Below, one piece after another: positions 3,011 to 57,000 of a stretch of 64,000 nucleotides of DNA. The position numbers and the translations under genes were made by a program. Numbering within the stretch: position 1 is the stretch's first letter; each line of letters opens with the position of its first letter. Below the pieces are notes generated by a model. That model did no database searches. It was not told the origin of the DNA and saw nothing but the letters and a program-made list of their open reading frames with translations. The DNA comes from Eutreptiella sp. 'Long Island Sound 2002' (taxonomy: Eukaryota > Protista > Euglenida), in the NCBI GenBank assembly GCA_964036045.1, contig OZ038378.1, positions 162,688,001-162,752,000 on the forward strand, given 5' to 3'.

Positions 3011-4389
3011 TGATGCGAAATCACCTCACGGCTGGAACATCCACAATGCATCTCAAGGATGTACCACCAGATGTCCATCAAAAGGTCATGCAGGGGTGGA
3101 GAACACCTTGGCACATTTGAATTGAGGCATCATGGCAAACGCCCCTTCCTTTTGGCACGTCACCAACGGCACCTGCGCCGCTGCCGCCCCTGTCACTGCC
3201 ATGTCACTTCCATTGCAAGTGTCACCGTTTGCCACGGCCGTGGCCACCGCTTCCCCTGCGCCCTTGGACGTCCCCCGCACTTTGCAATGTGCTGTTGCAC
3301 AAAGGCATGGGCGCTCCACCGTGAGGGGGTGCGTCCTTCAGGAACTTGGGGCAGAACTCCTGCAAACCGCAGTTGGGATTCGCTTTGATTCACCGACCCC
3401 CCGTTTCTGTGGGGGGCATTGCACACCCTCCGTAGCTACGACCGATGGCGTGTCATTCATGGAGGGGGCGCCAGGAGGCAAGTGTTCTGGTTGACCAACA
3501 GAGACGGGCAACCCTGTCCATTTCCATGGATCCTGCGGGGGCGCTTGCGTCGGAAGGTTGGGACGTGGTTGGGTGACTCCCTGGCTGAGCCCCCTCCCTC
3601 CCCCTCTGCTGATGTACCCTGAAGAGCCCTGAGCGCCAGTATGGAGAGCAGATGCAGGGACGAGGGCTGAATTTGGCAGCACACTTTGTACTGTGACAGC
3701 GCCGTACACCGGCGGGATGGGCAGAAGGCGATGACAGCCGTGGGGCAAGCGCGGCCAGAGCCTAATGCAGGCACTGCACCCTGACCGTTTGAGGCCCTCT
3801 GCTGATGTGCACCAAGTGCTGTGCCTCAGGCCCCAAACACGGCTGAGCTCCTTTTCGATTTGCCCCTCGGCCCCGCTGCCAAGAAAACGCGCCGTGGGTG
3901 TCGAACAGCAGCCATTCAAACGTATTGACGCTGCTCCCCTGAAAATGGATCACAGTCCCCCACTCTACCCACTACCGCCGGGGGTGCCGTCGCTCTCCTC
4001 ATGATACCTGTGGTGCACTCAGAGGCTGCAAGCGGTAATGCCGGCCTCATCCCGTTGCTGCATGCGCCTGCACGCCCTGGGAAGTGTAGGGGAGGAGGTG
4101 CACTGTGCCATGCAGGACATGCGAGGGAAACTGCCGGCGAGAAGCATTCGGTGCCCGTTTGGGCCCTCGTTTGCTTGGGCTCCACCCCCGGCAGCACGGG
4201 TTTGGGCCCAGAAACTGCGCCTCAAAGGACTCCAAATTCCCAAATCTGCACCATTTGGGGGGCGTTGGGCCGAACCCCTTTGCGGGCATTGGGGGGGCGT
4301 AGACGGGCCCGCCTGCGGATGCGCTTGATGTTTGCAAAAGGGACCCTGCCCGATGGGGTGGTTTGGGTCTGGACCGAACTACGGTTCAG

Positions 4390-4390
<1 letters not shown>

Positions 4391-4480
<90 letters not shown>
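4391..4480. repeat. (TG)45 microsatellite
   Basis: Perfect TG dinucleotide run of 90 nt, read directly. Confidence 0.98.
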
Positions 4481-4482
<2 letters not shown>

Positions 4483-5177
4483 GCCAGTGCTCTGAGCTCG
4501 CCCCTGTTCTTGCCTTTAGGCCCCCGAGACACAGCCAACGGGTGACGACACGGAACTGTTTTTATCACTATCCCCAAATTCACCGTTCGGTAACGACGGG
4601 GAGCCCTCATGCCTCCTGCCCTCCGACTGTGATGCCAGCGGCGTGTTGCACGATGATGAAACCCTCAGGTATCGGAGGGGCAGGTCGTGGGGGGGCTGGA
4701 GCTGGGAGGAGGGTGGAACGAGGTTGTGGGAACAGGGTTTGGAGGGGGAGGCGGGGGAAGAGGTCGGCAGGCAGAGGCGGTTGGAGGAGATTGGCACGGT
4801 CCCATTGGTAATCCGCACGAAGAAACAGCAGCCACAAACATAGGCTCGGAAAGGCAGACTACCGGTATGAGCAGCAGCAACTCTAACGGGGATTTGGTCG
4901 GGTCCCGGTGGCGAGGGGTCCCAGAGATGTGCGAGCGCCCGCGGCCCATGCCCGGAACCATCGAAGATCGGAGGGGCCCATGCTCCGGCATGCCGTGATA
5001 TTCCCGGGGGCCAGCCCCCAGTCCATCGAACCCCATCCTCCCTGGACTGCAACCAATTTATTCATTCAAACCCAAACTAGTGCATACACCCGGAAGTACC
5101 AACTGGCGCACTTAGCCTTTGCAGCAACCTCGCCCCTCCCCCACCTTTTTTTCCCCTCAGAGGGTCAGAATGAGCAG

Positions 5178-5240
5178 GCAAGAGGTCAATAGGCGCCAAA
5201 GGCAAACAGCCTAATACCGAGGCCTTGTGCCAAACCCCCC
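5178..5240 (+). repeat. Short interspersed repeat, second copy at about 18918-18985
   Basis: gaggtcaataggcgcc...gaggccttgtgccaaacccccc matches gaggccaataggcgcc...aaggccttgtgccaacaacccccc. Confidence 0.65.
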
Positions 5241-5965
5241 CTCCCGCCCGCCCCTGCAGTGGTGCGGCGCTGTCTACGCGCGGTGACCCCGTCCGACTCT
5301 ACTATCTCTGACCGCAATGTTTGTAGTTAGGAATGCTGCGTGACATGTTTGCGGTACGGTGCTGCATTTGGGGCTGGTTCCGCTCATAACAGTATCAACA
5401 GCATTCTACTTGGGAGTGCAACCCACTTCTATTCTTTGTGAGACTGTAGCTATCATGGGCCCCAAACCACCAAAGAGCCGATTGCCTGTGAGTCACCTGT
5501 TCTTGTACAAGCGCAACATCCCTCGAATTGAGCAACGTAAAAAATTCAACTGTGGAGGGGGGGTGGGGGGCGTTTGAGCCACTTTTTTGGGAGGGGGACA
5601 AGGGGGGTTTGAAAAAAGGCTCCTGTGACCAAAGGTGTATCTACTCAAACAATGCACTTGGGGTTTGGCTTGCCCCCTGGGCAACGGCAAAGGGCGGCAC
5701 CCCGCAGGACAGGGCGTCGCCGTTTGCCTGAGCCCCCCCCCCCTCCTCCGGTCGCACTGAGCACCTCATAAAAGAGGGGAGAAACGCCACCAGCTTGTGT
5801 GTTTGTGTGTTCACCTGCCCACACCCCTTACCCCCGCCCTACCCAGACCCGCCCACATGCCCGCCCACCTACCCAGACCCTCGCCTCCCTCTGCTGCTCA
5901 CAAGCCCATCCACACGCCCGCCCACCCAACTAGACCCTCACCCCAACCGCCCACACACACGCCCA

Positions 5966-7025
5966 GCCGCATGTGGTGTCCGGAGGACGTGAAAAAAAGT
6001 ATCGGTTCAGAAATATTTTCATGAATGAATTAAATCTTAAAGGGTGCGTTTCTGCAGCGTGCATTGGCCAAAAATGCAGCTTGGGTTACCCCCGAGGCAA
6101 AAGCAAATGGCCACACCCCTTGGGATGGTGCTTCAGCTTGCCCCCCTCCAATTTCATTAAGCATGTCACAAAAAGTGGGGGGTTAAGCACCACCAGTTTT
6201 GAGATATTTGGGTCGCAAAGTGCTGGCTTAGGGCCAAGCATGGCATGGTTTGGTATGGCGTGTTTTCAGATGATCATCCGTGTCAGCAAACTAGAAGCCA
6301 TTTTCACCCGATTGGTACGCACACATTGCTTCCCAATTGGCGTACACATGTGTATTGGTGACGGATTGCTGGACTGCTGTAGTTCTAAGGGCGATTTTCA
6401 GATTATCTCAAGAGAAAGAGAGCGTTCACCTGCCCAGCCGGGCGCCTGCCTACCTGCCCGCCCTCCACCCACCGGCCCACCCGTCCACCTACCTTCACCC
6501 CTACCCCGCGTGCTCCCACGCCCACCCACATGTCCGCCAACCTACTCATACCCTTACCCCACGTGTCTAGCCGCCCCGCTCACCCATCAAGACCCTTATC
6601 CCACTCACACACACACCTGCCCACCCACCCACCCAATACCCAAACCCTTACCCCGCCTGCCCACCAGCCAAACCATGTGCCAATGGGATACAGGCCAGCA
6701 CAAAACATGCATTTGAGGCTGTCCGGAGGACTTGAAAAAATGTATCGACTGAGAATTATTTTCATGAATTATTTCTCAACTGGTGCATCTTTGCAGCTGC
6801 ACCGGTGTGCGAAAAATGTGGTGTTGATTGCCCCTTGAGCAACGGCAAGGACCGCACCCCTTGGGACATGGCTTCACCGCTTGCCCAACAGGGCCCCTCT
6901 CTGCATTGAGCTCGTTGTAAAATGGGGGTAGCACCACCAATTTTGAGATATTTGTGGTACAAAGTGCTAGCTCGGGGCCAGGCATGGCATGGTTTGGTAT
7001 GGCGTGCTTTCGGGTTATCATCTAT
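5966..7025 (+). repeat. Two diverged ~315-bp direct repeats (5966-6280, 6708-7025) separated by C-rich tracts; partial third copy at 5665-5730
   Basis: Shared blocks tgtccggaggac.tgaaaaaa, ttttcatgaat, gcaccacca.ttttgagatattt and gcatggcatggtttggtatggcgtg. Confidence 0.85.
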
Positions 7026-7305
7026 GCGACATGGATCCCCATGGCTGTATATGCACTCCCATTGTCACCAAATGATCACCCAACAACGGCGCAAGAATCC
7101 CTGGAGGCCGTCAGAGGCCATCCCAAAATGGCAATTTTTCAGCCAACCCATGACGGCCTAGAAATGGCTAAGTCCTCACTGGTGGGGCCCCATAGGGGGG
7201 CCAATCATAGAAACTTGGATATCGTTTAGCCATAGGTGCCTATCGATTGGCCACAGGTACCTATTTCTTGGCCGACGAAGGCTATTCGTAAAATGTGCGT
7301 GCGGG

Positions 7306-7448
7306 GTATGGTATAGGCTGTTGGTGTAGAACGGTTGGTGGGTATGGTTAGGGCTGTTGGTGTAGTACGGGTGGCGCGTGTGGTAAGGGCTATTGATTTA
7401 GTATGGGTGGTGAGCATGGTAAGGCTGTTTGTGTAGTACGGTTGAAGA
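7306..7448 (+). repeat. 36-bp minisatellite, about 4 copies
   Basis: Unit approximately gtatggtaagggctgttggtgtagtacgggtggtgg, tandem with no spacers. Confidence 0.85.
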
Positions 7449-7487
7449 CATGCAAGTAAGGAAGGGGCACTACTGTATACTCATGGG

Positions 7488-8063
7488 TCAGACCACATCG
7501 GTACCCATGTCTAATGCAATTGTCACCCACACTGCCACTTCTCTCCACAACACAGTGAGATGATCATGTGTTTGCTGCCCCATACCGCGGCCCTGTGGGA
7601 TCACTGACCTGCCAAAAAAAAAGCCAAATACTGCCCACAAAACATGATACAAATGTGATGGTCTGACATACGTTTGGGCAACCCCTTGGGGACAGTCCTT
7701 TGGGCCGGCGGTTAACTGCCAACCGCCGGTGGCTAAGCCCAAACACTTGTTCAGTAAGCACCGACTGCGAGTAAAGGGACCACCAGTGACAAACCTCAGA
7801 TGAATGTATTGCTGGATGATTTGAGACTTTGCCATGTGGTGCCTGATTACTTTCTCCGTGTTCTTCTTGTTGGTCCAGTGAGAACCCCCCTGGATCAGGG
7901 GGGCGCAGCCACATGGGACAGCATGGAGAGTGGGTACGTCAATGGAACCGAACAGGATTGAGGCGAGACGCGTGTGGGCACGCCAGGGGACCGTACCCGT
8001 CCCATCGTTGTCGCATCCCTGTCGCATCCTGTACTCAGTGCATGGTGCCACATCTCCGCCCAC
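7488..8063 (-). pseudogene. Remnant of an unnamed protein family (GGx[FL]TRS...PQG)
   Basis: VTGGPFTRSRCLL...GGWQLTAGPKDCPQGVAQTYVRPSHL aligns by eye with KCGGHFTRSPQ...AGCLLLADSGVCPMPQGFCVQHDVGPDRL (31358-31825) and GGWLTRS...APKG (34396-34683). Confidence 0.5.
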
Positions 8064-8727
8064 TCATTTCTCACCCCCGTACTCCCACTTTAAAACGCTC
8101 TTCTCTGTTGTGTAATCCCCTTAGTAATTCGGAACCTCCTTCGATGGCGTTGGACAACTCACCGGCCGGTGTTGACGGGCGCAGCACCGCGTTTCCTCTA
8201 CTCTCTGCACTGTCCGTCTCATGCAAACCGCTGGGGGCACCAGAGCCCTTGCCAAGCAACCGTGAACTGCCAGCGCGCCCGCGAGCCCAGTCGCCAGGGC
8301 CTGGGTACGCTGCAGCCACCGCCAGCAGCCTGAGTTATGCCTCTGCCACTGCGGCCTCTGTGGTATGTTTGTGTTTACGCCGCAATGGCACCTTTGAAGT
8401 CTGCGAGTGTTGCATGGAGCATCAAGGGGAAGTTGCTGGTTGTAGGCTTCAGCTGTTGGTTCATGCACATGTGCATATTTTCTGATGCCCTGCCCACAAA
8501 AAGGCCCATGGCCTCCGCCTTGGACTTGAAGCTTGAACTGATGTGCCGATCAAATGTGCAATTACGTGGCGATTTTCGTTCCACAAGGGCGGCAGGTTTT
8601 CAACTCTGGGGGGTCATGGGGGGGGGGGTCAATCGAGCTCTCCAAATTGGGGAGGGGGGGGGGTTGGGGAAAAGGGCTCAATTGACAAGACCCATTATTT
8701 CCATTGGCACCAAAGGCACCAGGAGGA

Positions 8728-9310
8728 AATTCTATTGCCTTCAGCAAGTCCACCTTGTTGAGAACCTACCCCAAGCAACACACATTCAAAATAGGGTAAA
8801 AACTACATCAATACGGGCTAAAATATGCTTTACATATCTTGGATGGTCATTTTAGGTGACCACTCTATCAAAAAGATAAGTTTCGGAAAATTCTATTGCC
8901 TTCGGCAAGTCCACCTCGCAGAGAATCTGCCCCAAGCAACGCACACACAAAATAGGGTAAAAAACTACATAAATACCGGCTAAAACATGCTTCAAGTATC
9001 GTGGATGGTCATTTTAGGTGATCACAATATCAAAAAAAACAACTTTCGAAAACTTCGATTTTTGAGCTGCCCAGGGTGAAAAGCTGCATAAGCAGGTTGT
9101 GTACCAATCCCTTGGGAGACCCCCCCCCCTGGAGCTAATACCCAAATAGGGTGAAAAACACATAAATACGGCCTAAAACATGCTTTACATACCTTGGATG
9201 GTCATTTTAGGTGATCACAATATCATAAAAACAAGTTTCGAAAACTTCGATTTTTGAGCTGCCCATGCCCAGCGTGAAAAACTGCACAAGCAAGTTGTGT
9301 ACCGGCCCAT
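8728..9310 (+). repeat. Interspersed repeat with internal tandem subunits; same family at 63633-64000
   Basis: Core aaatacggcctaaaacatgctttacataccttggatggtcattttaggtgatcacaatatc occurs three times here and twice at the window end. Both copies begin aaattctattgccttc. Confidence 0.92.
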
Positions 9311-9689
9311 TCACTAGGCCATTATTGGTGGAAACAGTCATTTCGCGTCTTAGGCACGGGTTGTGACCGGCTCTCAGCAAGGCTAGAGACTGCAAAAAAA
9401 CGTCCTTCCGTGTCCTAGTAGGCATATACTGTCACAACATCCCCACTCACACCCCTCAGAGTGGGTACCACGGGGTCACCGAGGTTGCCAAAACCGCCAA
9501 CATAGCAAAAATGGCTGAAAGTGCATAAACTGCATTAGCGCTCGTCCCACTCCGCCCCATACAAACCCCATGGAGTCGGGACCCGGAAACACTTTTTCGG
9601 CTCAAAATCCAAAAAAACCAAAAGATTCTCGATTTTCAACTCAAAAAAAGGGGGGTCATTTTTTTTCGACAATTTTGACCCCCCTTTCA

Positions 9690-10640
9690 CCCCCCCCCAT
9701 CCCCCTCCCTCAAAACCTCAGAAAAGTGGGTTTCAAGTGGGGGGGTTTGGGGGGGTCCGGACCAAAAACTCATTGGGGGGTGCATTTATTGGACAAAATA
9801 ATGATTTTACAAGGGATTAAACTAACAATTCAACCCCTTGGGGTAGGGTACGCGAATAGGCCCAAAAAGGCCCAAAATGGGGTATGTGGCGTTTTCCCCT
9901 ACATACGCCTGCCTAGCTTTGATCTAACAACCTCTGCGAGGTGATTTTGGTCAATGGTGGCCTACACAAAAATGTCCATGATGCATGCATGTCCACATGC
10001 TGCTAGAATAATGCAAGGTGTGGTTGCCCCCAGACTATGTGCATGGAAGCGTGCCATTGACCCCAAACCCGACACACAATGAATACCGTGTAGGTGGAGC
10101 ACGCGTAGTTATCCCAATCCACCACATACTGCATACCGGTACAGCATGCAAATGAACCTCTGTCCCCAAGGCAAGCAGTGGCCGAATGGTAATGCAGCAT
10201 ACTGCAGAACTTTTGGTCGGCGGTTTGAACCCAGGTCCGGCAAACATGGCAGTGCCGCCGCCGAGGACAGTCGACCGACCGGCATTCGAATCACCGACCT
10301 AAAACTCTGCAGTCGGGTGCGTTACCATTGGACCGGGGTTTGATGTGACAATTATGGGCCACCCCACTGCTTGGAGCCTCCTGAGCAAAACCTTTTGACA
10401 CCCCCCCCCCCCACCCCCACCCCCCACCTCAAAAAAGTGATATCCAGTTTTAGTGGATAGAGGCCTCAGAATCGAAAAATCCATTGGGGGATGGTCTTAT
10501 TGGGCAAAATAATGATTTTACAAGGGGTTGGACATCAAATACCATGCCTTGGGGTATGCTACGTGAATGACCCAAAAAAGGGGGGGTATACGACGCCCGC
10601 GCCTGCGCTTGATCTAACAACCTCTCCTCGAGGTGATTTC
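9690..10640 (+). repeat. Pair of ~250-bp degenerate direct repeats (9690-9950, 10400-10640) flanking a tRNA-like segment
   Basis: Shared ttattgg.caaaataatgattttacaaggg, ccttggggta.g.tacg.gaat and ttgatctaacaacctct..cgaggtgattt. Confidence 0.8.
10172..10243 (+). other. tRNA-derived (Cys-GCA-like) pseudogene or SINE head
   Basis: A box TGGCCGAATGG (10179), loop CTGCAGA and B box GGTTTGAACCC (10222) are at tRNA spacing. The acceptor and anticodon stems do not pair, so it is not a functional tRNA. Confidence 0.6.
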
Positions 10641-11015: not shown

Positions 11016-12079
11016 TAGTGTCAAATGCTCCTATTCTCACCAGCTGGGTCCCAATATTCAGTCCTGGTTAGCCCTACCCTGGTGAGCCCTACCCTGACCC
11101 TATGTAAGTGTCGCCCTCCCCTTCTAACCCCGTGGAACCCCCCCTTCTGCGGCCCCCCTGCCCTCTCCTCTATTGAAACCCTGGACGTTCTGGGTTGGTT
11201 TTGGGGGGTCCTGTCAATTGAGCCCTTTTGGGGGCGGGGGGTGGGGCAATTTTCATTCATCCTGCGTTTTAGATCTTGACGCCGCCAGCACAGCAAATCA
11301 GAATGAAAAGGCTTGGATTTTCAGTGGTGTCTGGATTTGACTGGGAAGATCCTGTTTTTGGAAACATCTAATATGGGGCACAACACTTTCTTTTTCCCTG
11401 CCCGATGGGATTTGCCGGGATTAGTGATAGGCTGCCTGTTTCGGGCCTGTATGGCCCCACTTTGGGCTATGAAGTTGGTGACACCGCAAGTCTTGTTCTT
11501 GACTTCATCACATTGAGGATTCCAATATGACAAACAAAGATCATTTTTTGACGAATTTCTGACAGCTGTGTTTCGATACTGTCAGCACCAATTATCATTC
11601 CCCTCGGGCTTGATGAACAGCAACTGGATTGCCCGCAGCATTCTCCTGGCCTGCTGTTGTGGGGGCTGATCATGAGAACACCAATGCGCTTGCAACCACC
11701 GCCTAGCCTCCGCCTGGTCGTCAGCGGCTTTCAAGCGTCGACGGTTGTGATGCTGTTCCGTCTGTCTATCTCAGGCCAACCGCAGCAAGGACGGCACGCG
11801 AGATCCCAGCCATGGCATTTCATACGGGAGAAAGTATGTGGTGATGAACTTGTGCACCTGCCCAGAGGCTGGCAACGGTTTTGGCGAAAGAGGGCACAAC
11901 AATCATGCCAAGCTGGGGGCCACCCTTTGCAACTGTTTGCACTGGGCGGTTCGAGCGCCCAGCAGCACACCACTGGGCAAACATTGGGCAGATGAGGCTG
12001 CAGGACAGGGATGCTTTTGTGGTGGCTTCCGACGCCTGCTTCCTCCCTTGCAGTGGGCCCGGGATGATGAAATGACTGC

Positions 12080-13558
12080 CGATTTGATTGGGTGCCCGGA
12101 CGGCGGAAGTCCAGAGAGCACACTTCCTGATCAAACGGCTGTCCAAATACCGCCATTTGGCTCCAAAATGGGGCCGCCAAGGGGCCTAAACAAAAGTCTT
12201 TCAAAAAAACAATCGCTGCCTCGTGGTACGCGGCTCAAAAGGGAGTGGAAACAAGGTTTGCCAGCACACATCATAGTGATGGGCATAGCAGTGATGCATG
12301 AAATCCCTCCACAGCACAGGCCCTCGGGTGAAAGCGGAGCAAGGCTGTGGACTTGGCGCAACCCGCGGGTACCCATGCATACAAAGGGGAAACAGCCCCC
12401 CAGTTCCGACCTCTTGGCTGCCGGCGGGCACTACAGCAAGGCATACCACCGCCGCTCCAGCCAAAGTAACAACACTGGTTTGCTCATGAGTTTGCTCCTA
12501 GTGCATGTTGGGATATGTGGCCCAGCAGAAGCAAGTGGCCGAACCCGCATCTCCTACTGCAACACCAATCTCCACCCATCGCCCTGGGTGGCACACATAC
12601 TGCGCAAGGGGATGGACATATGGTACACGCACTACGGACATAGGTACATGGGGTGGGGGTGGGGGTGGGGGGAGTGAGGCGCTCGCCACAAGGAGGCCTG
12701 GGCACGGAAAGGGCAGGTTGAAGGTTGTTATGTGCCGTCAAGAAAGTGACCCTGGCAGTGGACCTAGGGCCCAGCACCCGCTGTTTGGGAGGGTTTTGGA
12801 CCGGGAGATCAAGGGCACTAGGTGATGAGAGGCCAACGGGCCATGCTACCTACGGAAGGAAAGGGTTCAAGGAATGGACAAGGATACGTGGCAAGAGGCC
12901 GATAGGCACCGCCAGCTTCAGACAGCGACCCAGGCATCATGCCATCCCCCCCCCCCCCCCCCCGGTTGTAGCAGCACCAACCCTCCCATCTTCCCTGGAC
13001 ACATGGTGGCACATGGGCTTTGGCCTTCGGGCCATGGTTGTCGCAACCAGGAACCAAAGTGTGGCCCTAGGGGGGTTTCCAAGGTTCCATGGGGTTGGCT
13101 GCTCCTGCACAAGAGACTGGGCGGCCCTGCCCATGGACACACTGCCAAACCACCCCTGCGTTTCCTTTGGAGGTAAAATGCCTGGATGTGCTGCCACTGA
13201 TGTGTACTATTTGGTGAAAAGGAAGCCCGTGGCTTTGTGTTATATTTCCCACATCAGCAGTGGAGTGCACCCTGAACATCTTTATGAGTGCCGTAGAGTG
13301 CACATATGCAAGGAGAGTCCTTTACACGGGCAGTGCAACAATATGTGCATGGCTCCATTAACCAGCTCACTGATAGTATTTGGCTGGGAAGAAAATGGAA
13401 GCCCCTTTTCAATTCATTGGTCACACACCTGCCCGAAATCAAGTGCATACCCAATGTTCGATCTACGGTTGTGGCAATGGCCAAATGTGAAGGCTACCAG
13501 TGCCGGCACAGGAGTGAACATCACAGGGACCCGCAACCTTGAAGCATTTGGGCGCTGA
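12080..13558 (+). pseudogene. Degraded PLE-like reverse transcriptase (copy lacking the B-C insertion)
   Basis: Across frames: RTRISYCNTNLHP (~RREVIAFCNVPL), NQSVALGGF (13058, motif B), PLRFLWR*NAWM (motif C remnant, ~13150-13190), HLYEC (~AQLCEC), IPNVRS (13453, ~RMNVRS). Confidence 0.5.
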
Positions 13559-14089: not shown

Positions 14090-15667
14090 GTGGTGGCTGG
14101 CAATCTCACAAGCCACTGCCCCAATCGCTTGCCACGAAACGCTGGCCTGTTTGCGACAACCCAGACACAACAACAAAATAGAAATGTGCAGCAAACTGTA
14201 TATTGTACAATATCCGCTCTGCATTCCCCTGCAAACAGTACAGGTCAGCAACGAATTCTTTTTGGATAGTTTTGGTTGAACACAATGAGTCCCGAAACTG
14301 CATAAACACAAAACCACCAGATTGCACCGAATTTGCGTCTCAGAAGATACGGTGAGAATGCTGGTTGTTGCATAGGCGCAAGAGTGAAGCCGCGAAAGTG
14401 GGAAGGGTTGGTCCAAGGGGGAGGGGGGGCGAAGCCGATATGCACGGTTGTATTTTATGACCTGCGAGGCAGGACCTTGTTAATCTGGTTGTTAACCTTG
14501 CAGTCTGCCTCTCCAATGACCATACAGTCCCAGTTGTCACGGTGAGAAAGCTCGTGCGCCGCAGTGGTTGTGTCATGATGATGAAAACATGCAGATAACT
14601 CACAAGGCAGGAAACATGTAAACGCACGCATCGCTTGGTGCAATTTCCAAATTGGAATAACAGGGGCAGAAACAGCGCATATCGGATGCCGAGTTTGTTT
14701 TTGGTATCCCCAAAGACTTACCTTTACCAACGAGCAAAGCAAGCTTGGCACGAGGCAAAAGGCACCAATCTTCATCATACACCAGCTGTTGTAGGTCCGT
14801 TACCATTCCAATGGGAGGTACAAAGCGATTTGTGTGTGTGCAGAAGGTGCCACACATGAGGAAGAGATGTCTAATTCGTGTGGATGAATCTTCCAGGGGC
14901 TTGACCGCTCGGAGAGTCTGCAGACTGTCCACTGGGAGGCACACCACTGACATCACTTGCCCTGTTTTGTTTTTTTTGGCACCCAAGAAGGGGCGGAGCC
15001 GGAAGGGCACCACCTCGGATCATCTGAATCGGACTCCGGCATCCCCGTGTCATGATGGGCCCGGGAGGCAAGATGTCTGCCGCATCCACTGCGACACGAG
15101 CACATCGCAGGGCAGGTGCTGGTCCCATTGAGGCAAGGAACAGTCATCCACATTTTTGAACAGCTGCCTCGGGAAAATCCCCCAATTTGGTGTCTCTAGA
15201 CCGTCTGTCCCCTTGTTGATTGATGTTGGGTTGGCAAGTAGTAGAGGAGGAGTCGATGATTGCGCTTCGCTTGAGCTTATAGAGGAGGGTCATTAAGCCT
15301 CGGTGCCTACCTGACTGGGCCTGCTGGCGCTGGCCCTAGTGCTGCTGCTCACTCCCTTCCGTCAGAAGTAGGAGGCGAAGGCAGGAAACCATTGGAAAGC
15401 CGAACTAGCAGCCTCTCTTTGGGGCCTGCGGCTGAATATACGTTTTTTGCATTTCCAAAGACCCAAGTGCTCGTGCCATGAGTGAGGGATTTCGGAGCCC
15501 CCCGAAGTTGTGTTGTTGCGTGCGTTGATGCCTGTGACCTCTGGGGGGGTCTGCCTGTCCACGACATGTCGCAGGATTATGGGTGACAGCATGATATCCC
15601 TGAACTGCACTTCCCCTGACGCATCCCGAATCTCAAATGGAGAGGTGTGTTGTTGGACAAGGGACAT
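14090..15667 (-). pseudogene. Degraded PLE-like reverse transcriptase
   Basis: Across frames: LWKCKK...RPQRE, AQSGRHRGLMTLLYKL (~ARVIGRCLQLLVKAL), FVPPIG (motif B, ~14810), LSHRDNW (motif C, 14533-14541), SLLHISILLLC (~SLLHKSLLYCC). Confidence 0.5.
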
Positions 15668-46448: not shown

Positions 46449-48398
46449 CTACACTATCATGGACCGCCATCGTTGCACCGGTGTGCCACCTCCCGTGACA
46501 CCCTTGAGGATTGTCCTCAGGACCCGTTGCGAAGCTGTGAGCGCTCTATCTATAACAAGGCCAAGTCCGGCCACTTTGGGCTCTGTGGGCCGGTGCGAAG
46601 CGCGCAGCACAAGGCGGCCCGAGGGCCCTTCCCTCCCCGACGACGGGATGAGCTGGTCAAATTGTGCTGCAACCACGCATGTATGGAAAGGGGCACCACC
46701 ATTGCTTGCAGTAGCCTTTGTCCGCACAACCCCTGACAATGGAGGCCAGATTCATTTGCTTGTGTAAAACTCAATTCCAAGCAGTGTGTCTTGAAACGGG
46801 GACATCCGTGCCTTATCAATTATGGTAGGCAGCATTGACTGCGAAACGCTGATACGCAATGGCGTTCATCAACATAGCCGGAGTGGGGTTGGTGACAACT
46901 TGGCACTCACACCAATCAACGATAGGGCCATTGAGGTCATGGTATATAATGTATTGCCCGGCAGGCGGCCTCCCAAAGGCTTCGTTTCACGAAGCATGAC
47001 TCTCTGGTGATTCAATAGTGCAAAATGCGTGTTCAAGAGGGGCCTGCTTCGTTTTGGTGCCGCATTCACAATGAAGCCGAAGCTCCCTTGAGGGTGGGAG
47101 TCCCACAACTGAAGCATCAAGATGTCACACTCAATACCATGCAGAGTCACGGACCCTAACTTCTTGTTGGTTTGATCAAACCAACCACGCACACCGTATG
47201 ACTCAAAGAACTGCACATTTTTGGGAATCAAGGCTGGGTTCTGAACGAAAAAAACTTGGTCTTGTGGTGTAGGAGAGCGGAAGGAGGTCCTTCTTGCGGC
47301 AACCACCTTTACTTTTTTCACATGTGCTAACATACCATCACGGCTCATCAAGGGTATCTTGACAAGATTTGCACACAATACAATAATTGGGCAGAAAGAA
47401 ACCCCCCCAATTTTGAAATCCCCTTGGCTCCTTGCCTCATGAGCACTCGATCAACAGAGAAAAAAGTGTTGTGCATGCAAACAACATATTCGTATGCTGG
47501 CTCGAAACACATTGTGTGAAAAGACGCCCCGCGATCTCGGTGGCGATCGCCCCCCCGTGCTATACGTATACGTGCTATACGTACTAAACCACGGTTCACT
47601 TCTTGTGGAGTCTTGCCCCACAGTGAGTTTGTTTACAAACAACAACGCATCAAAAAAAAAAGGCTTTTTTCATCGATCTTCAAGTACCAATTCCACAAAT
47701 CTCTTTCATGTACCATTGTGGGATGGGTAGTAACATCAAACGTCAAGAGGGCTAGGTACATATCACGGACTCCCATGAAAGAACGGAGGGGCATATTTGG
47801 GTACAATCGGATGGCTTCACGCATCATCAGGGGAAGGCACTGGCCCATCGCTTGGGCTAAAGGCTTCGCCAGGTGGTGCGCAAAAGCAATTGCATTTTCC
47901 CAAAGGCAAAAAGTTTCTATCTCTTGTGGTTTCCACTTGGGGTATTGGAAAATGGAAGGCGGCGCTTGTTTGCGCTTGGGGACTTGAAGGATAATTAGAA
48001 TGGGGAAAGGGAGCACGACCCACAAGGACCGTGGGACAAAGTGTGTCACCACGAAGATCGACCTATGTTGGGGATTTGGAAAGCTGTACACAACAACCAC
48101 AACTCTAGAATGTGATGCCTATCTAATGACTGTAGAGATAATAGCATAGCTTGGCATTGCCAATCGCAATCACACACCCGAATTACATCATACTCCTTGG
48201 CAATTTTATTCCATCCCATGTATGCTCAAGCAGTATACCACAACCCCCCCCCAAGTTTATGTAACTTCTTGTAACAAGGTGTAGCGACAATGCCCCACAG
48301 ACGTTCACTGATATTCTCCAAGGAAGTTGTGCTGTAGACATCCTATCCTTGTCGGGTAGACATCCTAACAGCTTGGGCTCTGTCTGTGTTTTGTGCAA
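46449..48398 (-). pseudogene. Frameshifted near-full-length PLE-like reverse transcriptase with B-C insertion
   Basis: Collinear with the 52080 ORF: GCLPDKD (~48350), PSIFQYPKWK, IAFAHHLAKPLAQAMGQCL, HERDLWNWY (motif A), KLGGFLSAQL (motif B, ~47400), insertion GWFDQTNKKLGSVTLHGIE...PKRSRPLLNTHF, frameshifted R-YVD-NAI (~46865), LRTILKGVTGGGTPVQRW. Confidence 0.8.
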
Positions 48399-50200: not shown

Positions 50201-52079
50201 GGGTATACGGGGGTAGCAGGGAGTGTGGGGCCACCGACCTGTGTTGGAGGGAGGGAGGGAGGCAGGGAGGGGGGGGGGGAGGGGGGGTGTCCGGCCATTC
50301 CTATTCTCAACCGAAAATTCTCACATTGTCGCATATTCTCTCCCCTTCGATCTGCGCAACATCATGTACCCGCCAAAACCGCTGTACGGTGTAACTGCTT
50401 TGTAACGTTTTTGGAAAACAACAATTTGCAAGTAGTAACAATGAGATGGGTAACCATGTCATCCCGGCGCGCTAGGGTGATTTGCCGAACTCCGAGCGTT
50501 TTCCGCCCGTGGGTCACAGTCGCGTCGATTTCTCAAGATTTTTTTGGGATCTGCAGGATTTTTCTAGATAGATCTACAGATTGAGAGCCAGGCTCTCGAT
50601 TGATGTAAAAAAATCCAGATTTGGTGGTAAATGGCGCCGCAGGTCACAGTGACGGCTCGTTTGAGCGCTACATAGCACCAAATCTTGTAAATCCTGGTTC
50701 TACGGGTAGCTACGGACCCAGGCTAGGTAGGAGGGACGGATCCTGTGGGTTTTTTCTGGTTGGGCTCTTTTTCTGCCTTGGGCACTGGTGGTACCTCGTG
50801 CTTTTCACTACGGTTTTCTTCTTTTTCCTAAGGGTGTCCATGGAAAACAGCCACCTTGGTCTTGATGAAGGACAGTTTTCTTTGTCCTTCAAGTGGACAG
50901 ATTCCACGAGTCTCTGGTTAGCTCAAAAAGATCCTTTTGTGGCTACTTCGGAAGCGACTCCTCCCCGCGCGAGGCCCGGGACGTCGTATTACGATTCTGC
51001 TCGTGGCAACAACTGATGAAGGTCAATACTGGGTACCGGAGCCGCCAGAGGCGCGTACAGCGGTGTAAGGAGGGATAGCCGGATTCTGTTGTTCCACGGA
51101 ATTTGTGGAGGGTTCTGGCCACCTGGGAAGAGGGATGACCACGCTCTTCCTTCTTTACACTTCTTAAAGGCCCTTAGGTGGAAATCGCAGAAATCCACAA
51201 ATCCACGGGGACATTATGTGGTTGGCCAAGTGGATAAGAATGCCCCCACGTGCCCCACACCCAAACCTGTGGTTACATGATGAATCGTAGCCCGTTTCAT
51301 AGATTCATCTTCATCTTCATGCGGCCCTAAGAAAAAAAGGCACCAAGACCAGTGAAATGCACAAGGTGAGCAAACAACATGAACTTAGTACATCGATGGG
51401 CAATAGACATGTGAACACAGGCACCCAACACAAAGGTGGAAAATGCCCCCCCCCCCCACTTCTACGTTGTGTGAATTGAACCGCACCACACCACAACATA
51501 ACACAACTTGACACAACATAAAACCAAACATAAGATAACACAACACGCTGGCTTGACTTCCTCCATCTCTAGTGCAGAAAGGCACAACCCAACGAAAGGT
51601 CATTGACGTCCCTCCCCTCCCGAGTTCCGTGAATACAATAAAATGATGGGCACACCTTCATTGTCCGTCCTCGAAGTAGAAGAAATGAACAACTGTAACA
51701 ACTGTAACAACAACGCACAAGAGACCGATAAGAGCAATCCGACGCCAATAAATAAGAAGTTCGAGATCCCCATGCCTAGGAAACAAAAGATTCATGACTT
51801 CCGTTTTCGTGCCGCCCCGCACGCAACCGACCGCATCAGGCACATACCTTAGCAACTTCTCATTGGTGAGGCGTGCCACCACTCGTCAACATTGTGTACC
51901 CAAGATAAACTACAGGTGGGACAACGTGACACATGAAACGTGACTCTTCCAATTCGCAGGAAGCACTAGTGGTTATGGAGAAATGGTATGGCTCCTTCAG
52001 TACCATGAACTCCTTTGATAGATGGGATGGCACGGTCCGGTGAAACCCACAAAGACAATGACAACTGCCCGCTAAAGAG

Positions 52080-54095
52080 ATGCCTGCTTGCAGGGACAGG
52101 CCATCAGAAAACAGAAAACACAGGGAGAGGACTTGGGTCGTGCGTGCTCCAGAGGACCAGGGTCTTCACCTGCTGGTATATGGGAAAGTGTGCCCAAAGA
52201 AAACTGTCATGTCGTCTGACACGAAAATGAAAATGAAAATGATGGACACACACCTCCTGCTTGATGTGATCCTAGGGCCCAAATTTAAGGTGTGGGGTTG
52301 GGGCTCATCAGTGAAGAGGGCCAAGGTGCTGGCTGTCAAAGAGATTGTTGGCCGTGCACGCCAAGAATGGGTCCTGGCACAGGCATGTTCGCTAAACCTG
52401 GGACACCCAGACCTACTCCTGGAGAGCTCAGCAGAGCAGTTTTTTGCGACCCTTCTTGACCCTGACGGTGTCACTGTACACCTGACCCCACCCCTGTGTG
52501 CCCCCACGCTCTTTTCCATGCTGAAATGGAAGTCAATTGAGACAGGTGTGCACCCCCTTATTAAACGGCGCGAAGTTATTGCCTTCTGCAACGTGCCATT
52601 GAAGAGGTATGCCCGGGTCATAGGGAGATGCCTCCAGCTTCTAGTGAAGGCCCTGTACCTTGAGTGTACGACGCTGGGGTTCCCACTTATGCTTGGGACC
52701 TGCGACTTTTCTCAGGCCTGCATCAGGTTATCCTCCCACACGTCCGCGGTCCATGTATGTGAGCAGGATATGCAGGATATGTATTGGGAGATCCCCAAAG
52801 TACAGGTGTTGGAGTCCTTCAATTGGGCTGTCAAACACCTGGGTGAACAGCGTAAACGACCTGTGTCTTTTTTTGCCATACATCGTGGTGGAGACAAAAT
52901 CCTGGACAGGCTGGGTAAGGGTTCTGAGGATATGTTCTGGAACGTCCCTGTCTCCTTTGTACTGCAATATGTCAGCTGGGAGTTGTACATGAACACCATT
53001 TTCACACTAGGGCCACTAATCTTAGAACAAGGAAGCTCAGGAGTACCCATTGGTGGCTGCCTGTCAGCACCAAAATCTGAGCTCTGGGCAATGTGGCGTG
53101 AACACATGTCTCTCTCAGAACAGACAGAAACTTTTCAGCAGGAGTGGCAAGAGGCGCTTGACGCGACAGCAGTAGGTGCAGTGTGCGTTGTACCGGGGCC
53201 GGGGCAGTTTACCCCACTGAGTGGGCAGGGAGACTTTGTTCGTTTCAGTGGGATCTGGGCGCACAGAGACAGGCAGCAGGCGCCAGACAGGTCCCCTCTG
53301 CATGGCCACACCTGCCCAGCTTCAGGTTTCTGGGCCCCCAGCGAGCAACTCGTGGCTTGGGTGCACATTGATGGGTGGGAAATTCCGTTTATATACTCCA
53401 CACCGTGGGATGGGGCTGCGCTGGGACGCACTGAGTCGATCCTGAGGTTCTCCCCAAGGAGGGATAAGCGGCTCCTGACGAATTTCTTCAGTCAGTTCAC
53501 GCTGGCTGATTTTGTCATTCACGAAATCTATTGCCCCAACCATCACACGCCTACACCCATTCCTTGTGTGTTGCTTGCGAGGTTCAAGGATAACGTGCCC
53601 ATGGCAGCGATTCATGTGCCAGAGGCAATAAAGCCGAGGCTTTTCAAAGCCCTTGAATGCTTCCTAAAGGCTATGTACCAAATAGGCCTAAAATGGGAAA
53701 ACCACGGTGACATTGCACAGCTGTGCGAGTGCGAGTTTGTGCCAGGTGAGGACGTATTCCTGAGACGAAAAGGTATTGTTCCTAACCTACAAGAGCCACT
53801 GAGACACGACTTTGAGTGGCAGAGGTGGCTGCCTGTGTCCTCCCCCAACGCCAAGCAAGTCCTGACGTCCACTTTCCCCTCATTGTTGCACAAGAGCCTC
53901 CTCTATTGTTGTAATCTGGAAGGATTCAGGATGAATGTGAGATCACTGGTGTGGGGGGCAGGATGGCACAGATATCCCCCAGACTGGTGGAAGAATTCAG
54001 TGAAAGGGTTCCTCCAGGAACTGAAACTGGTGGACTGCATCCCTTTCACTGACATAGACGAAGGTAAGGAGTTCCGTGGAGCCATGCCGACATGA
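52080..54095 (+). mobile_element. Intact 671-aa Penelope-like reverse transcriptase ORF, no endonuclease domain visible
   Basis: PLE-type motifs: RAPEDQG (~KPADKG), PTLFSMLKWK (~PxFYxLPKxHK), RREVIAF (~RPII), DMQDMYWEIP (motif A, D at 52767), QGSSGVPIGGCLSA (motif B, 53040), LARFKDNV (motif C, 53580-53594). Confidence 0.85.
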
Positions 54096-57000
54096 AGTGT
54101 ATGTATGCACAGGACGACCCAGCGTGTGTGGGTGCAGCGCGTGGGTAGGAGTAACTGTGTGTATGCGTGCGCCTGGTGTCCTAGGAATGGACTGAGCACG
54201 GTGCAAACACCTGTACTTGTGCACTGGCCCAGTCAGAAATGACCCCTGCTGCTGTATGGGAGGGCAGTTAGGGGGCCAGGGGGAGGGATAGGGTGCTGAG
54301 CTGTGTGCATGCCCCTGTGGGATCATTTTTTAAGCTCCCGAACTCATAACAGGTGCTTGTGCCGTGCATAGTCTGCTCCTATCAGAAAATGGTACTAACA
54401 GTTTTTGGCAACACCACGAAAGGGATGGGGAGAAATAGGTGAAGCATCATACACAGAAAATTTCCACATGTGTGTGTATACTAAAGCATGTGTGTAGACA
54501 TTAATGCAATGAATGCAGTGCATGCACCCTATTTCACACCCTACCATGTTCAATTGATTTTGGCTAAGGAGTTGGTGCTTGTTTGCCTGTTGGAGTAGTT
54601 GTACAGCGTAGGCCTACGATTCAGGTACTCTAGCCCACCAAGGGTCCTGGGTTACCAGACAACGTCTCCAACGATGTGCACAATGAGGACAAGCGACAAG
54701 TGACATGCACAACCAAGACGCGTTTCCTTTTCAGAGTTGGCAAAACTCAAGCCCCTAAATGACATCTTGCCGGGAAAGGAAGAAAGTAAACCCATGAGAA
54801 ATTGTCAAGAGGTGAAGGCGTGTTGACAAAGGGAACACCAATCACACGGCAATCAGCTACTAAAACAATGCAAGCAAAGGATGTTCCGTGGCGCTCTGGA
54901 TTCCAAAGATCTTGGCCTAGAAGGGTAGGGAACTCTTAGTGCCCCGTCCCCTCCCCTTCCCTTCCTCCCTCGTCTCGTTTGCTAGAGGCAGTACCACTAA
55001 CCCCTCCCTCCCCACTCCATCTTTGTGTGTGGTCGCGAGCGCCATCATTGGTCCGCGAGGTCGATCCATTTAGCGTGAAATTCAGGGAGTGTGCCGTTTC
55101 ATTCCCTTTCCTTACATATAAAATCTTCCATTGCCGTGAAGTAGCACTTCGCAACTGACGGCCACGAAAGTGCTAGAAATTTAGCATCGATCGATCCGCA
55201 TCAATATTCTCTACATAAACATATGCTTAGATCGTGCATAAACCCGAATCTACTTTATATCTAGGTGATGAATTTGGTGAGTGCGCAGCAAAGCAAAGAA
55301 AACCAATGCGGCACACGCCCAATATGTGTCGATACGGCCCCGAGAGCTCGTTTGCACTTCGTTGTTGTGGTTTGGAAAAATTCACCAGCATTCGTTTTGT
55401 TGTTTGAGGTCGTCGACGGCGACGGTGGAGCGCACATCGGGGGGCAATTCCATCCATGACGACCATCCACACACCCCCACCGTCACAAGAAGGGAGCGTC
55501 CGGGATCGTGACCTCAATTATCACGTCAATGGTACAACGGCACAAGAGGGGATTATCCGGTACCATGACGTACAATATCACATCAATGGCAGCATTACTA
55601 TTAATAGTAGTACAGACCATGCCGTGCTTATACCGGCGTATTATTGCTGGGCAACACCGTTTTGTGCAAAAATGGTGGGGAGGAGGCAATGTCACAAAGA
55701 CTTTGGCCTTAATTCCACGGAACGCCCATTTGCCAAGTATGTATGCATGCATCCAGTGAATCGTAGGGCATCTCCAACCGTCCGGTGGATTTGTTTTCCG
55801 TAGTATGGTCTCGGGAAGGAGCCATGCGCGCTTTGTTACCATTGAGGCCGCAACAAGGCGAATAGGTGTTGTTGACATTACATTTGGCGTGGGGTAGGGT
55901 GGAAGGGGGCCATCGCAAGATGCGCCTAACTGGTGGGAAACGAAACGTTGTGGAATGTGCAAGTGGTGGTTGTTTGGGGGATGGGTCGTCATTTGTTCCC
56001 GCAGAACGCCGTTTTTTTTTTGGTTGTGCGTTGCTCGCTGGTTCCATGCCGGAGCACATCATCCATTTGGTCATCCAATCATCCGATTTGTCCAAAGGTG
56101 ACCGCGCCTCGCGTGGTTGGGGTTTCACGGGAGGGCACATGCACACGCGCACGCGTGTGCGCACGCACAAGAGTAAGTGGTGGAGGAGGGTTACGGTTGG
56201 TGAGGTGGGATGTAACGAGGGAGCTTTTACAACTACCACGAGGGGGAAGGGGGAGGGGTTGCCGGCTCCATCGCTTCGACCAGTTGACTGCACTAGGTTG
56301 CTAGACATTTTGACTAGACAGCTTGGCTAGTTCAGACTCGGGGGGAACGGCCGTTGTGCCGCTTGTGCCGCCGCTAAATGGAAGGGGGGGTTCAAGGGGC
56401 GTGCCGCCGCGCCGCGCGTGCCACGGACGGGGTAACCACGATACCAATGGCGAAACCCACATACTCATCCCACCCAGGCTTCTTTTCAGAGTAATCTCGA
56501 TATGTTTCATGGGCAACAAGTTCGTCAAAGGAAAAAGCCCCCACAAAGAAATGTAATTGACCGACCATCAAACTATGCTCGGCAAGATTGGTTGCGACGC
56601 AATGCCAACGTGAAAGTGTGCCGGGATAACATCGCCGTCGATCCCTTTGGGGGTCGAGCATCCCAAAAGCAGGGAAGCCCTCAAAATGGCGGCGTAACAG
56701 CTGCCGTGCCCGGGTCCCAAGAATGTCGACTCCAATGAGGGGATAGTAAGGGGTTGTATGCCTGCACCACCCTCGTGTGCAGGTATGCAACTGGATTCTC
56801 ATTTGCAATTATTGGCGGTCGGTGTATAGCGTCTAGGTATCTGAATGTCTTCCTCGCCTAGCGGGGATGATCCAACGAATCAGGTTGCCTTCCAACTCCG
56901 CATGTCGTTGCACCACGCCTTCGCACCTTCCTATCCAAAGGCGAGATCATCGGCCGAAGGAGGGGACCCCTCTGCAAGGGGGGTGCTTATTGTGCGGCGC

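Follow-up and report, generated by a model that had tools for sequence, protein, structure and literature searches.

A truncated retroelement copy in the window

The stretch of DNA analysed here (the window, 64,000 nucleotides) holds on its forward strand an uninterrupted ORF of 671 codons, as the first-pass annotation had claimed, most of which lies within a truncated copy of a Penelope-like element (PLE) with a predicted reverse transcriptase (RT) domain. The features of this copy, and of a degenerate relative on the opposite strand, are as follows.

52080..54095, + strand: uninterrupted ORF of 671 codons; codons 1-52 (52080-52235) are flanking DNA that stays open by chance, codons 53-671 belong to the element
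52223..52240, + strand: three tandem GAAAAT units, (GAAAAT)3, at the 5' boundary; the third overlaps the first bases of the element
52235..54602, + strand: PLE-like retroelement copy, truncated at its 5' side and retaining RT core, thumb and 3' UTR, delimited by identity, read branching and depth
52761..52787, + strand: RT motif A, E228-Q-D230-M-Q-D233-M-Y235-W (aa 228-236), from motif pattern and conservation
53025..53072, + strand: RT motif B, EQGSSGVPIGGCLSAP (aa 316-331), modelled as a loop leading into helix 329-347
53112..53564, + strand: insertion of ~150 aa between motifs B and C, found in 'short' subfamilies only and missing from long forms
53580..53594, + strand: RT motif C, R501-F-K-D504-N505 (AGG TTC AAG GAT AAC), located where hairpin 496-499/505-511 turns
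53688..53699, + strand: RT motif D, L-K538-W-E (aa 537-540), with K kept in 81/87 members
53814..54083, + strand: helical thumb or C-terminal extension (aa ~579-668), from model helices and TERT alignments
54096..54602, + strand: 3' UTR, at a read depth of 126-763x against 2.9x in unique flanks
46660..48118, - strand: degenerate, frameshifted paralog, P0005-like at ~24-28% amino acid identity, detected by tblastn and the family HMM

The ORF had been described as intact, but the element copy that it covers is truncated at 52235 and its first 52 codons are unrelated to the element. A sibling protein of 1162 aa (P0172) is 99% identical to the window protein from residue 53 on and bears no relation to it upstream of that residue, while DNA homology to another copy (L002) begins at 52236. 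The read contigs branch at 52235/52264 and many of them diverge past 54602, and read depth over the RT is ~20-35x compared with 2.9x in unique flanks, a ~7-10x excess. The window copy is 98.1% identical at the nucleotide level to positions 4857-7260 of a sibling locus (L006) and, judged by this 98% identity, is a young insertion. The overlap of the (GAAAAT)3 run with the element start suggests microhomology at the 5' junction or a microsatellite target. Neither pseudo-LTRs or other terminal repeats nor poly(A) were found around the window copy.

Comparison with P0172 places the truncation point just downstream of a DK motif, and the window copy is without the N-terminal region, GIY-YIG endonuclease (EN), CxC linker and DK motif that full-length siblings possess. 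The absence of an EN is due to 5' truncation; full-length siblings carry this domain at their N-terminus. Conserved sites are also substituted in the window copy relative to P0172 (W to R163 and R to C208), and this copy cannot itself be autonomous. Taken alone, it resembles the RT-only ORFs, without a C-terminal GIY-YIG domain, of EN-deficient PLEs such as Athena and Coprina. An Athena/Coprina-like reading is ruled out by the EN upstream of the RT in P0172, and the family also differs from these elements in that no telomeric-repeat tails or hammerheads were seen in it.

Three paralogs of the ORF had been proposed within the window. The minus-strand sequence running from ~48118 to 46660 shows real homology, with profile positions 122-625 scattered across three frames, but the motif C reported near 46865 spans frameshifts (...SPTPLRLC followed by two stops, then GYVDE, then MNAIAY) and is compatible with R-Y-V-D-N as the reading of a pseudogene. 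The strings at 14533 (LSHRDNW) and 13170 (WR*NAW) gave no tblastn or family-HMM signal (--max, six-frame translation) and are attributed to chance.

Predicted fold and motifs of the RT domain

No sequence method connects the window protein to any RT, and its homology to RTs rests on predicted structure, motifs and architecture. With a cutoff as loose as E<=10, Pfam assigned no family to the window protein; of 119 aligned family members scanned at E<=1, a single one gave an RT match, a noise-level hit to RVT_1 (E 0.22). Pfam searches with ten long relatives yielded nothing useful. PDB searches, by phmmer and with profiles A2 and A9, produced no match, and searches for annotated or D-D relatives with the P0069 RT region and the A9 profile returned unnamed family members only.

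An AF2 model of the window protein reached a pLDDT of 86.6 and a pTM of 0.87; a model from just five sequences (pLDDT 43) was set aside. The top Foldseek matches in the PDB were TERTs, followed by G2L4 and group II RTs, with DGR and retron RTs also among the top matches. VIA-align gave Z scores of 13-15 against TERT over ~350-385 residues and of 9-11 against other RTs, while the structural neighbours in AFDB and Atlas fell in RT, GIY-YIG, HTH_animal and DUF8422 (PLE) clusters. The protein is therefore predicted to have an RT fold of Penelope-like or TERT-like type. The Penelope-like identity given by the first-pass annotation is supported both by this fold and by the architecture of full-length siblings.

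Motifs A to D occur in order and on the expected strand, helix and hairpin elements of the model, with RT-like motifs A (EQDMQDMYW) and B both present. Motif A comprises the catalytic Asp230 (D in 94/99 members), which lies at the end of strand 224-231, a family-specific Glu228 (93/98), D233 (D or E in 88/103) and an aromatic 'steric gate' at Y235 (F or Y in 103/106). In motif B every residue of G-V-P-I-G-G is kept in 81-97 of ~98 members. The A-to-B spacing of 93-114 aa, compared with ~40 aa in HIV-1 RT, may reflect an IFD-like insert, a likeness by spacing. Within the B-to-C insertion, the model is disordered at 380-410, confident for a hairpin at 422-440 and helical over 449-484. P0069 and P0101 are without the insertion: in these proteins the residues at profile positions 332-343 adjoin those at 483-485 or lie ~13 aa from them. 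The thumb helices of the model span residues 591-608, 613-629, 634-647 and 656-668, and structural alignments with TERT extend to residue 671.

TERT is the best solved structural match from fingers to thumb and has an insert between motifs A and B that the long A-to-B spacing here may parallel, and its motif C, L-L-R-L-V-D-D, agrees with the R-x-x-D-[DN] context of the present family. The family differs from TERT in showing no TEN or TRBD signal, in being multi-copy, truncated and linked to a GIY-YIG domain, and in having D-N in place of D-D.

Asp-Asn as the family state of motif C

The motif A aspartate and both aspartates of Y-x-D-D are treated in RT enzymology as a near-universal requirement. 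The first-pass annotation had read motif C as R-F-K-D-N, and this reading stands: in the context LLARFKDNVPM (aa 498-508) the second catalytic Asp is replaced by an Asn whose AAC codon is one transition away from Asp. Motif pattern and secondary structure, rather than model coordinates, would place D230, D504 and N505 at the metal site.

It had been proposed that D-N is shared across a diverged family, and the wider sample supports this. From 217 fetched family proteins, 78 cover D504/N505; position 504 is D in 71/78 and position 505 has Asn in 71/78, and 75 of the 77 members that cover position 501 have its Arg. Two of the three catalytic aspartates of RTs are thus in place, and the third position is occupied by Asn. 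Six intact full-length proteins (1307-1613 aa) have RFRDN or RYRDN, and the lone clean D-D, a natural N-to-D change, belongs to one truncated copy (P0167); the intact copies in this sample accordingly do not show the Y-x-D-D that would mark Asn505 as a private mutation. D-N also occurs in copies from a second, AT-richer organism (GC 38-40%, compared with 52-58% here), and at least one organism besides the euglenid-type genome carries the family. Sequence comparison therefore indicates that R-[YF]-x-D-N, instead of R-Y-x-D-D, is a trait of the whole family.

This family is large and diverged, with 1094 representatives at 50% identity (E<=1e-3), hundreds of fragmentary copies in one assembly, and clusters of 14, 20 and 115 members. 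Siblings are 98-99% identical and subfamilies ~25-30% identical. A pN of 0.22 against a saturated pS of 0.755 between subfamilies indicates that the RT is under purifying selection.

Element architecture and marks of mobility

The long forms and P0172 share one order of domains: a nuclease region reading GIY...YVGQTGG...R...H...Y...E...N, then CxC, then DK, then RT. Six long forms carry the GIY-YIG motif set, as do P0172 and the upstream ORFs of L001 and L002. Pfam GIY-YIG matched 2/7 EN segments at E 0.0035, below the curated cutoff, and was the only family to match more than one segment; I-TevI was the top PDB match of the EN profile (E 0.68). In the CxC linker C844 and C846 are invariant in alignment A4, with the variants HCDCP (L001), KCLCM (L002) and ACFCP (P0172). 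D965 and K966 of the DK motif are invariant in the same alignment, and the pattern [FWLM]DK[KRNG] is found in both long and short forms. Against Atlas, the first ~1000 aa of the long forms scored no higher than 0.70. The architecture matches that of N-terminal-EN PLEs of the Naiad/Chlamys type.

L001 has a single in-frame TGA between EN and RT. Selenocysteine insertion or readthrough at this codon was considered, but L002 has four stops in the same interval, so that decay is the simpler reading.

Element units are ~5.4-6.7 kb long. In L004 a 294-nt pseudo-LTR at 100% identity flanks a 6.7-kb unit that lies within a 31-nt minisatellite, L001 has an older pseudo-LTR (182 nt at 91%), and assembly of L008 gave a circular or tandem unit. 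The last ~70 nt of the 3' UTR (~54530-54602, ending GGAGTAGTTGTA) are common to subfamilies and form the most abundant part of the element in reads, over-represented up to ~260x relative to unique flanks. Four such tails were aligned, one of them a solo 70-nt tail in L006, and their structure is a weak hairpin almost without covariation. Rfam and hammerhead searches gave no match at the gathering threshold for the whole window and none at E<=1 for the 3' UTR. Near-identical pieces were present in two metatranscriptomes at a depth of 2-6, and may be DNA carry-over of multi-copy sequence.

Discussion

The fold, architecture, copy structure, family-wide D-N motif and purifying selection described here are directly supported, and from them we infer catalytic activity, target-primed reverse transcription and any compensation for the missing aspartate. 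The explanation that we consider probable is that an autonomous N-terminal-EN PLE (Naiad/Chlamys-like), whose RT would work with a D230/D504/N505 triad, inserted recently, in 5'-truncated form, at 52235-54602. Full-length elements encode, in this order, an N-terminal region or ORF1, a predicted GIY-YIG nickase, the CxC linker, DK, and a TERT-like RT that has a thumb and a putative IFD-like insert. Target-primed reverse transcription is the likely mechanism: the GIY-YIG domain would nick the target, and the RT would recognise its own RNA by the conserved ~70-nt 3' tail and copy it from the nick. Frequent abortion of synthesis would leave 5'-truncated copies like that in the window, and tandem priming could generate pseudo-LTRs. 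Asn505 may be tolerated or exploited through compensation, for which the candidates are Glu228, which precedes the motif A Asp by two residues, and a Mn2+ preference.

The first-pass annotation had offered two readings of D-N, an active RT with altered catalytic geometry or a dead protein spread in trans, and the first suits the evidence better. The second, which we regard as unlikely, holds that the RT-like domain is catalytically dead, that the family spreads through the RT of another element or no longer spreads, and that the domain has a non-catalytic role in RNA binding or RNP assembly. Prp8, in which an RT fold persists without catalysis, would be a parallel, and the failure of any RT family model to recognise the protein is in keeping with such a loss. 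In addition, retroviral RTs need their second motif C Asp, as does Ty1 in vivo, and a change of this residue to Asn abolishes replication in both (PMC2148107). However, one would not expect a palm without catalytic function to retain D230, D504, K538, the motif A aromatic and G-V-P-I-G-G at the frequencies seen here, in two hosts and in lineages that are 25-30% identical. Purifying selection on the RT, the union of EN and RT in one ORF in full-length copies, and young copies with a conserved 3' tail specific to the D-N family all argue against it too. An active D-D-N RT is favoured because of this selection, the young copies, and the retention of the motif A Asp, the first motif C Asp, the steric-gate aromatic and the motif D Lys.

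It is very unlikely that the enzyme is an active but unconventional polymerase, either an RNA-dependent RNA polymerase (RdRP) or a template-independent (terminal) transferase. A D-N motif C is otherwise seen in RdRPs, where natural x-D-N motifs include GDN in the L proteins of Mononegavirales and ADN in birnavirus VP1, and some RdRPs are among the weaker fold matches. Against this, TERT and PLE RTs are the closest folds, well above RdRPs, and motif A follows D-x-x-D-x-[YF] with an aromatic at what we take to be the position of the Y115 steric gate of HIV-1 RT, which excludes rNTPs. Genomic copies with 5' truncation and pseudo-LTRs also imply a DNA product. That these are domesticated host genes of a TERT-like or rvt-like kind, instead of a mobile element, is hardly credible. 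Long ORFs under purifying selection and a window copy without surrounding poly(A), hammerhead or terminal repeat would suit such genes, but the hundreds of fragmentary copies in one assembly, graded truncation, highly over-represented 3' tail, pseudo-LTRs, repeat-array target, linked GIY-YIG nuclease and truncation of the window copy within its coding region would not.

The mobile N-terminal-EN PLE that we favour has its closest described counterpart in Chlamys (Craig et al. 2021, PMC8557442), which has GIY-YIG, CxC linker, DK, RT and thumb in the same order, together with an IFD-like insert to which the long A-to-B spacing here may correspond. In both, the GIY-to-YIG stretch of the EN is free of the CCHH cysteines, the residue after DK varies, and a canonical hammerhead ribozyme is absent, as in N-terminal-EN PLEs and unlike canonical PLEs. 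Shared as well are heavy 5' truncation with abundant 3' ends, stop codons that detach EN from RT in some copies, pseudo-LTRs, insertion into repeat arrays, tandem repeats in UTRs and a unit of ~5.4-6.7 kb. The present family departs from Chlamys in its motif C, R-[YF]-x-D-N and not D-D (the D-D of Chlamys and Naiad being presumed), in the conserved E-x-D of motif A and in the ~150-aa insert between motifs B and C of some subfamilies. Sequence divergence puts its RT beyond the reach of Pfam RVT_1 and of every solved RT; Naiad RTs, by contrast, find canonical PLEs by BLAST (PMC8557442). A euglenid host is absent from the hosts listed in that paper, and among the papers searched there was no link between PLEs and euglenids and no natural Y-x-D-N RT. 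What had been put forward as an undescribed system belongs to a type of element already described (PMC8557442); new are the D-N at its catalytic site, how extremely it has diverged and the lineage of its host.

For the D-N motif itself the nearest precedent is the D211N mutant of Ty1 RT, in which the same change at the second Asp of Y-x-D-D leaves a D-D-N enzyme that still polymerises in vitro, with a 223-fold lower kpol and a preference for Mn2+ (PMC2148107). D211N is a laboratory mutant of an LTR-retrotransposon RT, defective in transposition unless suppressors partly restore it (PMC2148107), whereas D-N here is the natural, conserved state of a multiplied PLE-like family. D-N spans hosts and subfamilies at ~25% identity. 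We put forward, as a serious possibility that stops somewhat short of being probable, that this is the first natural retroelement lineage with a working Asp-Asp-Asn RT, ancient and kept by selection, and maybe compensated by Glu228 (E-x-D) or altered metal use.

Here we have described a family invisible to Pfam that keeps D-N under purifying selection and shows signs of having retrotransposed recently. Should its enzyme be active, it would be a natural counterpart of Ty1 D211N with built-in suppressors that could be mapped, RT detection based on RVT_1 or YxDD would be missing a whole PLE lineage, and the hosts of N-terminal-EN PLEs would come to include a euglenid-type genome together with one or more other organisms. 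All RTs have been held to have three conserved aspartates (PMC2148107). If the D-D-N triad proves true, this rule of 'three invariant aspartates' would have a viable natural exception, and the family would make it possible to study, in naturally evolved enzymes, how the chemistry of a polymerase withstands the loss of a metal ligand.

Reverse transcriptase identity of the window ORF

The first-pass annotation had described an open reading frame (ORF) with an aberrant reverse transcriptase (RT) motif C, and both were found as described, the frame running without interruption on the forward strand.

Features of the window ORF
52080-54095, +: ORF, 671 aa
aa 228-236, +: motif A, EQDMQDMYW
aa 316-331, +: motif B, EQGSSGVPIGGCLSAP
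aa 498-508, +: motif C, LLARFKDNVPM (RFKDN = AGG TTC AAG GAT AAC, nt 53580-53594)
aa 537-540, +: motif D, LKWE
53112-53564, +: insertion of ~150 aa between motifs B and C

The window protein matched zero Pfam families, even at E<=10, and nothing in the PDB by phmmer. A word-seeded search found seven homologues, all from megabase contigs belonging to a single ENA assembly and none named or carrying a Pfam domain, and an exhaustive profile search returned 1094 representatives (50% identity) at E<=1e-3 and 513 at E<=1e-10. Family sequence profiles matched no solved RT in the PDB, and Pfam RVT_1 gave nothing but one noise match over 119 family members. An AlphaFold2 model from a 119-row alignment (pLDDT 86.6, pTM 0.87) was disordered only at residues 1-44 and 380-410. 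Foldseek against the PDB placed telomerase RTs first (Candida, Tetrahymena, yeast, Tribolium and human), followed by G2L4 and group II intron RTs; VIA-align scored telomerase RT at Z 13-15, with ~350-385 residues aligned from fingers to thumb, ahead of diversity-generating, group II and retron RTs (Z 9-11). Neighbours of the model among AlphaFold DB clusters and in the ESM Atlas were RT, GIY-YIG, CCHC and HTH_animal/DUF8422 proteins, a combination that marks Penelope-like elements (PLEs). In the model, the motifs occupy the positions expected of an RT: D230 closes strand 224-231, G-V-P-I-G-G precedes helix 329-347, and R-F-K-D-N makes the turn in hairpin 496-499/505-511; from this we infer the metal-site geometry. 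By predicted fold and motif pattern, the family is an RT lying outside curated sequence models.

The B-C insertion, modelled as a confident hairpin (aa 422-440), three helices (449-484) and a disordered loop (380-410), is found solely in the window copy, P0002-5, P0172, P0192 and P0200, the short subfamilies; the long forms, which are the intact siblings of 1307-1613 aa, lack it.

Structure of the window copy and its paralogs

Read depth in the organism's own runs was ~2.9x in unique flanks, ~20-35x from roughly 52121-52264 to 54163, and 126-763x over the final ~250 nt to 54602, beyond which many contigs diverge. The related protein P0172 (1162 aa, same assembly) is identical to the window ORF at 554/560 positions (99%) from residue 53 onward and carries 602 extra residues upstream of the match. 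At the DNA level, window 52235-54617 is 98.1% identical to 4857-7260 of L006, a locus carrying a relative, and this identity sets in abruptly at 52235, within a (GAAAAT)3 run at 52223-52240. Such sibling identity of 98-99%, beginning abruptly at 52235, identifies the window copy as a young, 5'-truncated insertion whose ORF starts with 52 codons of flanking DNA open by chance. The earlier description of the element as intact therefore holds for the open frame and fails for the element, which sibling sequences match only from 52235 (residue 53). The window copy is also substituted at sites otherwise conserved (W->R163 and R->C208).

The element ends in ...GGAGTAGTTGTA at 54602, lacking poly(A). 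Its terminal ~70 nt are kept between subfamilies whose coding regions share only 68% identity, and L006 has a solo 70-nt tail downstream. Separately, read depth rises to ~470x in window 50484-51035 and to ~75x in 54900-55267 (flanks, 2.9x), and contigs break sharply there at 50631, 50944/50947 and 55158; these are unrelated repeats flanking the element.

Of the three paralogs proposed within the window, that near 46865 is genuine, being a degenerate, frameshifted minus-strand copy (about 48118->46660) whose motif C is broken across frames and compatible with R-Y-V-D-N; those at 14533 and 13170 are without homology support.

Conservation of Asp-Asn across the family

Conservation was counted over 217 family proteins, using only those covering each site.

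Conserved residues (window numbering)
E228: E in 93/98
D230: D in 94/99
Aromatic 235: F or Y in 103/106
R501: R in 75/77
D504: D in 71/78
N505: N in 71/78
K538: K in 81/87

Asp-Asn is thus a family trait, as the first-pass annotation had supposed, and exceptions at residue 505 are scattered singletons. The check proposed in that annotation, whether most intact copies carry Asp-Asp, leaves the trait standing: all six intact long forms have RFRDN or RYRDN, and the sole clean Asp-Asp protein, P0167 (RFKDD, same assembly), is truncated. P0167 falls in the window copy's own 90% cluster and represents an N->D change that arose naturally in a single copy. Two of the six long forms come from a data set with a GC content of 38-40%, against 52-58% here, and therefore from another organism. 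The Asn codon, AAC, lies a single transition away from Asp. Comparison between subfamilies gave a pN of 0.22, with pS saturated (0.755). Asp-Asn would, on these sequence comparisons, be the ancestral and selected state of the family.

Full-length siblings and insertion loci

The six aligned long forms (P0164, P0161, P0101, P0126, P0069 and P0158; 1307-1613 aa) share a GIY-YIG-type endonuclease (EN) core, V-Y-x(10)-V-Y-V-G-Q-T-G-G...R...E-H...L-Y...E-x-x-W-I...N, invariant C-x-C and D-K, and RT motifs A (E-[LF]-D-[VIL]-x-[DE]-M-F-P), B (G-x-[PA]-I-G-G-x-[LM]-S-A-Q) and C (R-[FY]-R-D-N). Motifs A and B are 93-114 aa apart, a spacing suggestive of an insert like the IFD. Pfam GIY-YIG was hit by 2/7 EN segments (E 0.0035), whereas no other family was hit by more than one of them, and the EN profile found I-TevI first in the PDB (E 0.68), aligned on the GIY...YVG core; the EN segments have no cysteine pair between GIY and YIG. 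At loci L001 and L002 this EN core recurs in the ORF upstream of the RT, which terminates at the CxC motif and shares the frame of the RT ORF; a single TGA (7983-7985) separates the two in L001 and four stops do so in L002, for which decay is the simplest reading.

Full-length long-form unit (6.7 kb) at locus L004
2661-3270 and 9694-10517: flanking pseudo-LTR (pLTR) regions
3492-4949: ORF1
5001-9743: ORF2

Directly 5' of this unit, a 294-nt block (ORF end and 3' UTR) recurs with 100% identity, and the unit sits inside a 31-nt minisatellite running on at both sides. L001 has a pLTR equivalent at 91% identity. In L008, a Logan contig (SRR23012402, GC about 40%) whose host is an organism other than the window's, the first and last 30 nt are identical (1-30, 5362-5391), so that the 5.36-kb unit assembles as a circle, that is, tandem copies or a circular form. 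No hammerhead ribozyme was found with Rfam in the window or in the element's 3' UTR. L004 also holds a 32-nt tandem array (1-1800; at least 48 in-register copies, 93-97% identity) and, adjoining the long-form element, a 531-aa minus-strand product (11496-13091) matching Pfam DUF5906 (PF19263).

Discussion

The best reading of these elements is an autonomous PLE moving by target-primed reverse transcription (TPRT). The GIY-YIG domain would nick the target, and priming by the RT would take place at the conserved 3' tail; where synthesis aborts, 5'-truncated copies would result, the window copy among them, and tandem priming would generate pLTRs. We argue that the RT is probably active despite Asp-Asn, because the remaining catalytic and dNTP-binding residues are kept, its sequence evolves under purifying selection, the copies are of recent origin and copy number is 3'-biased, as is typical for TPRT elements. 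The same substitution in Ty1 RT (D211N) permits polymerization in vitro, with kpol down 223-fold and Mn2+ preferred, and second-site suppressors regain 5-10% of transposition (PMC2148107). Glu228, which is family-specific and lies two residues ahead of D230 on the same strand of the model, is a candidate compensating carboxylate. A dead RT mobilized in trans explains less of this evidence, as does an RdRP-like activity; so does a domesticated gene.

Two estuary metatranscriptomes contained near-identical ORF and tail pieces at depth 2-6 and zero pieces from the unique flanks of the window copy; these may be transcripts or, since the element is multi-copy, DNA carry-over.

The element type is already known. 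The full-length siblings resemble in architecture the EN+ PLEs with an N-terminal EN (Naiad/Chlamys type), which are described with GIY-YIG, a CxC linker, RT, IFD, pLTRs, no canonical hammerhead ribozyme, DK without a fixed third residue, extensive 5' truncation and frameshifts that detach the EN, and of which Chlamys lacks CCHH (PMC8557442). UTR tandem repeats are reported for Chlamys, and long-form 3' UTRs here likewise contain them (L003 9868-10377 and L004 9987-10517; units of 33 nt, about 83 nt and 31 nt). What appears new relative to the literature searched is the host lineage, divergence beyond the reach of Pfam, the ~150-aa B-C insert of some subfamilies and, with Chlamys and Naiad compared by description only, a Y-x-D-N motif C that occurs naturally and throughout the family of a retroelement that has multiplied.
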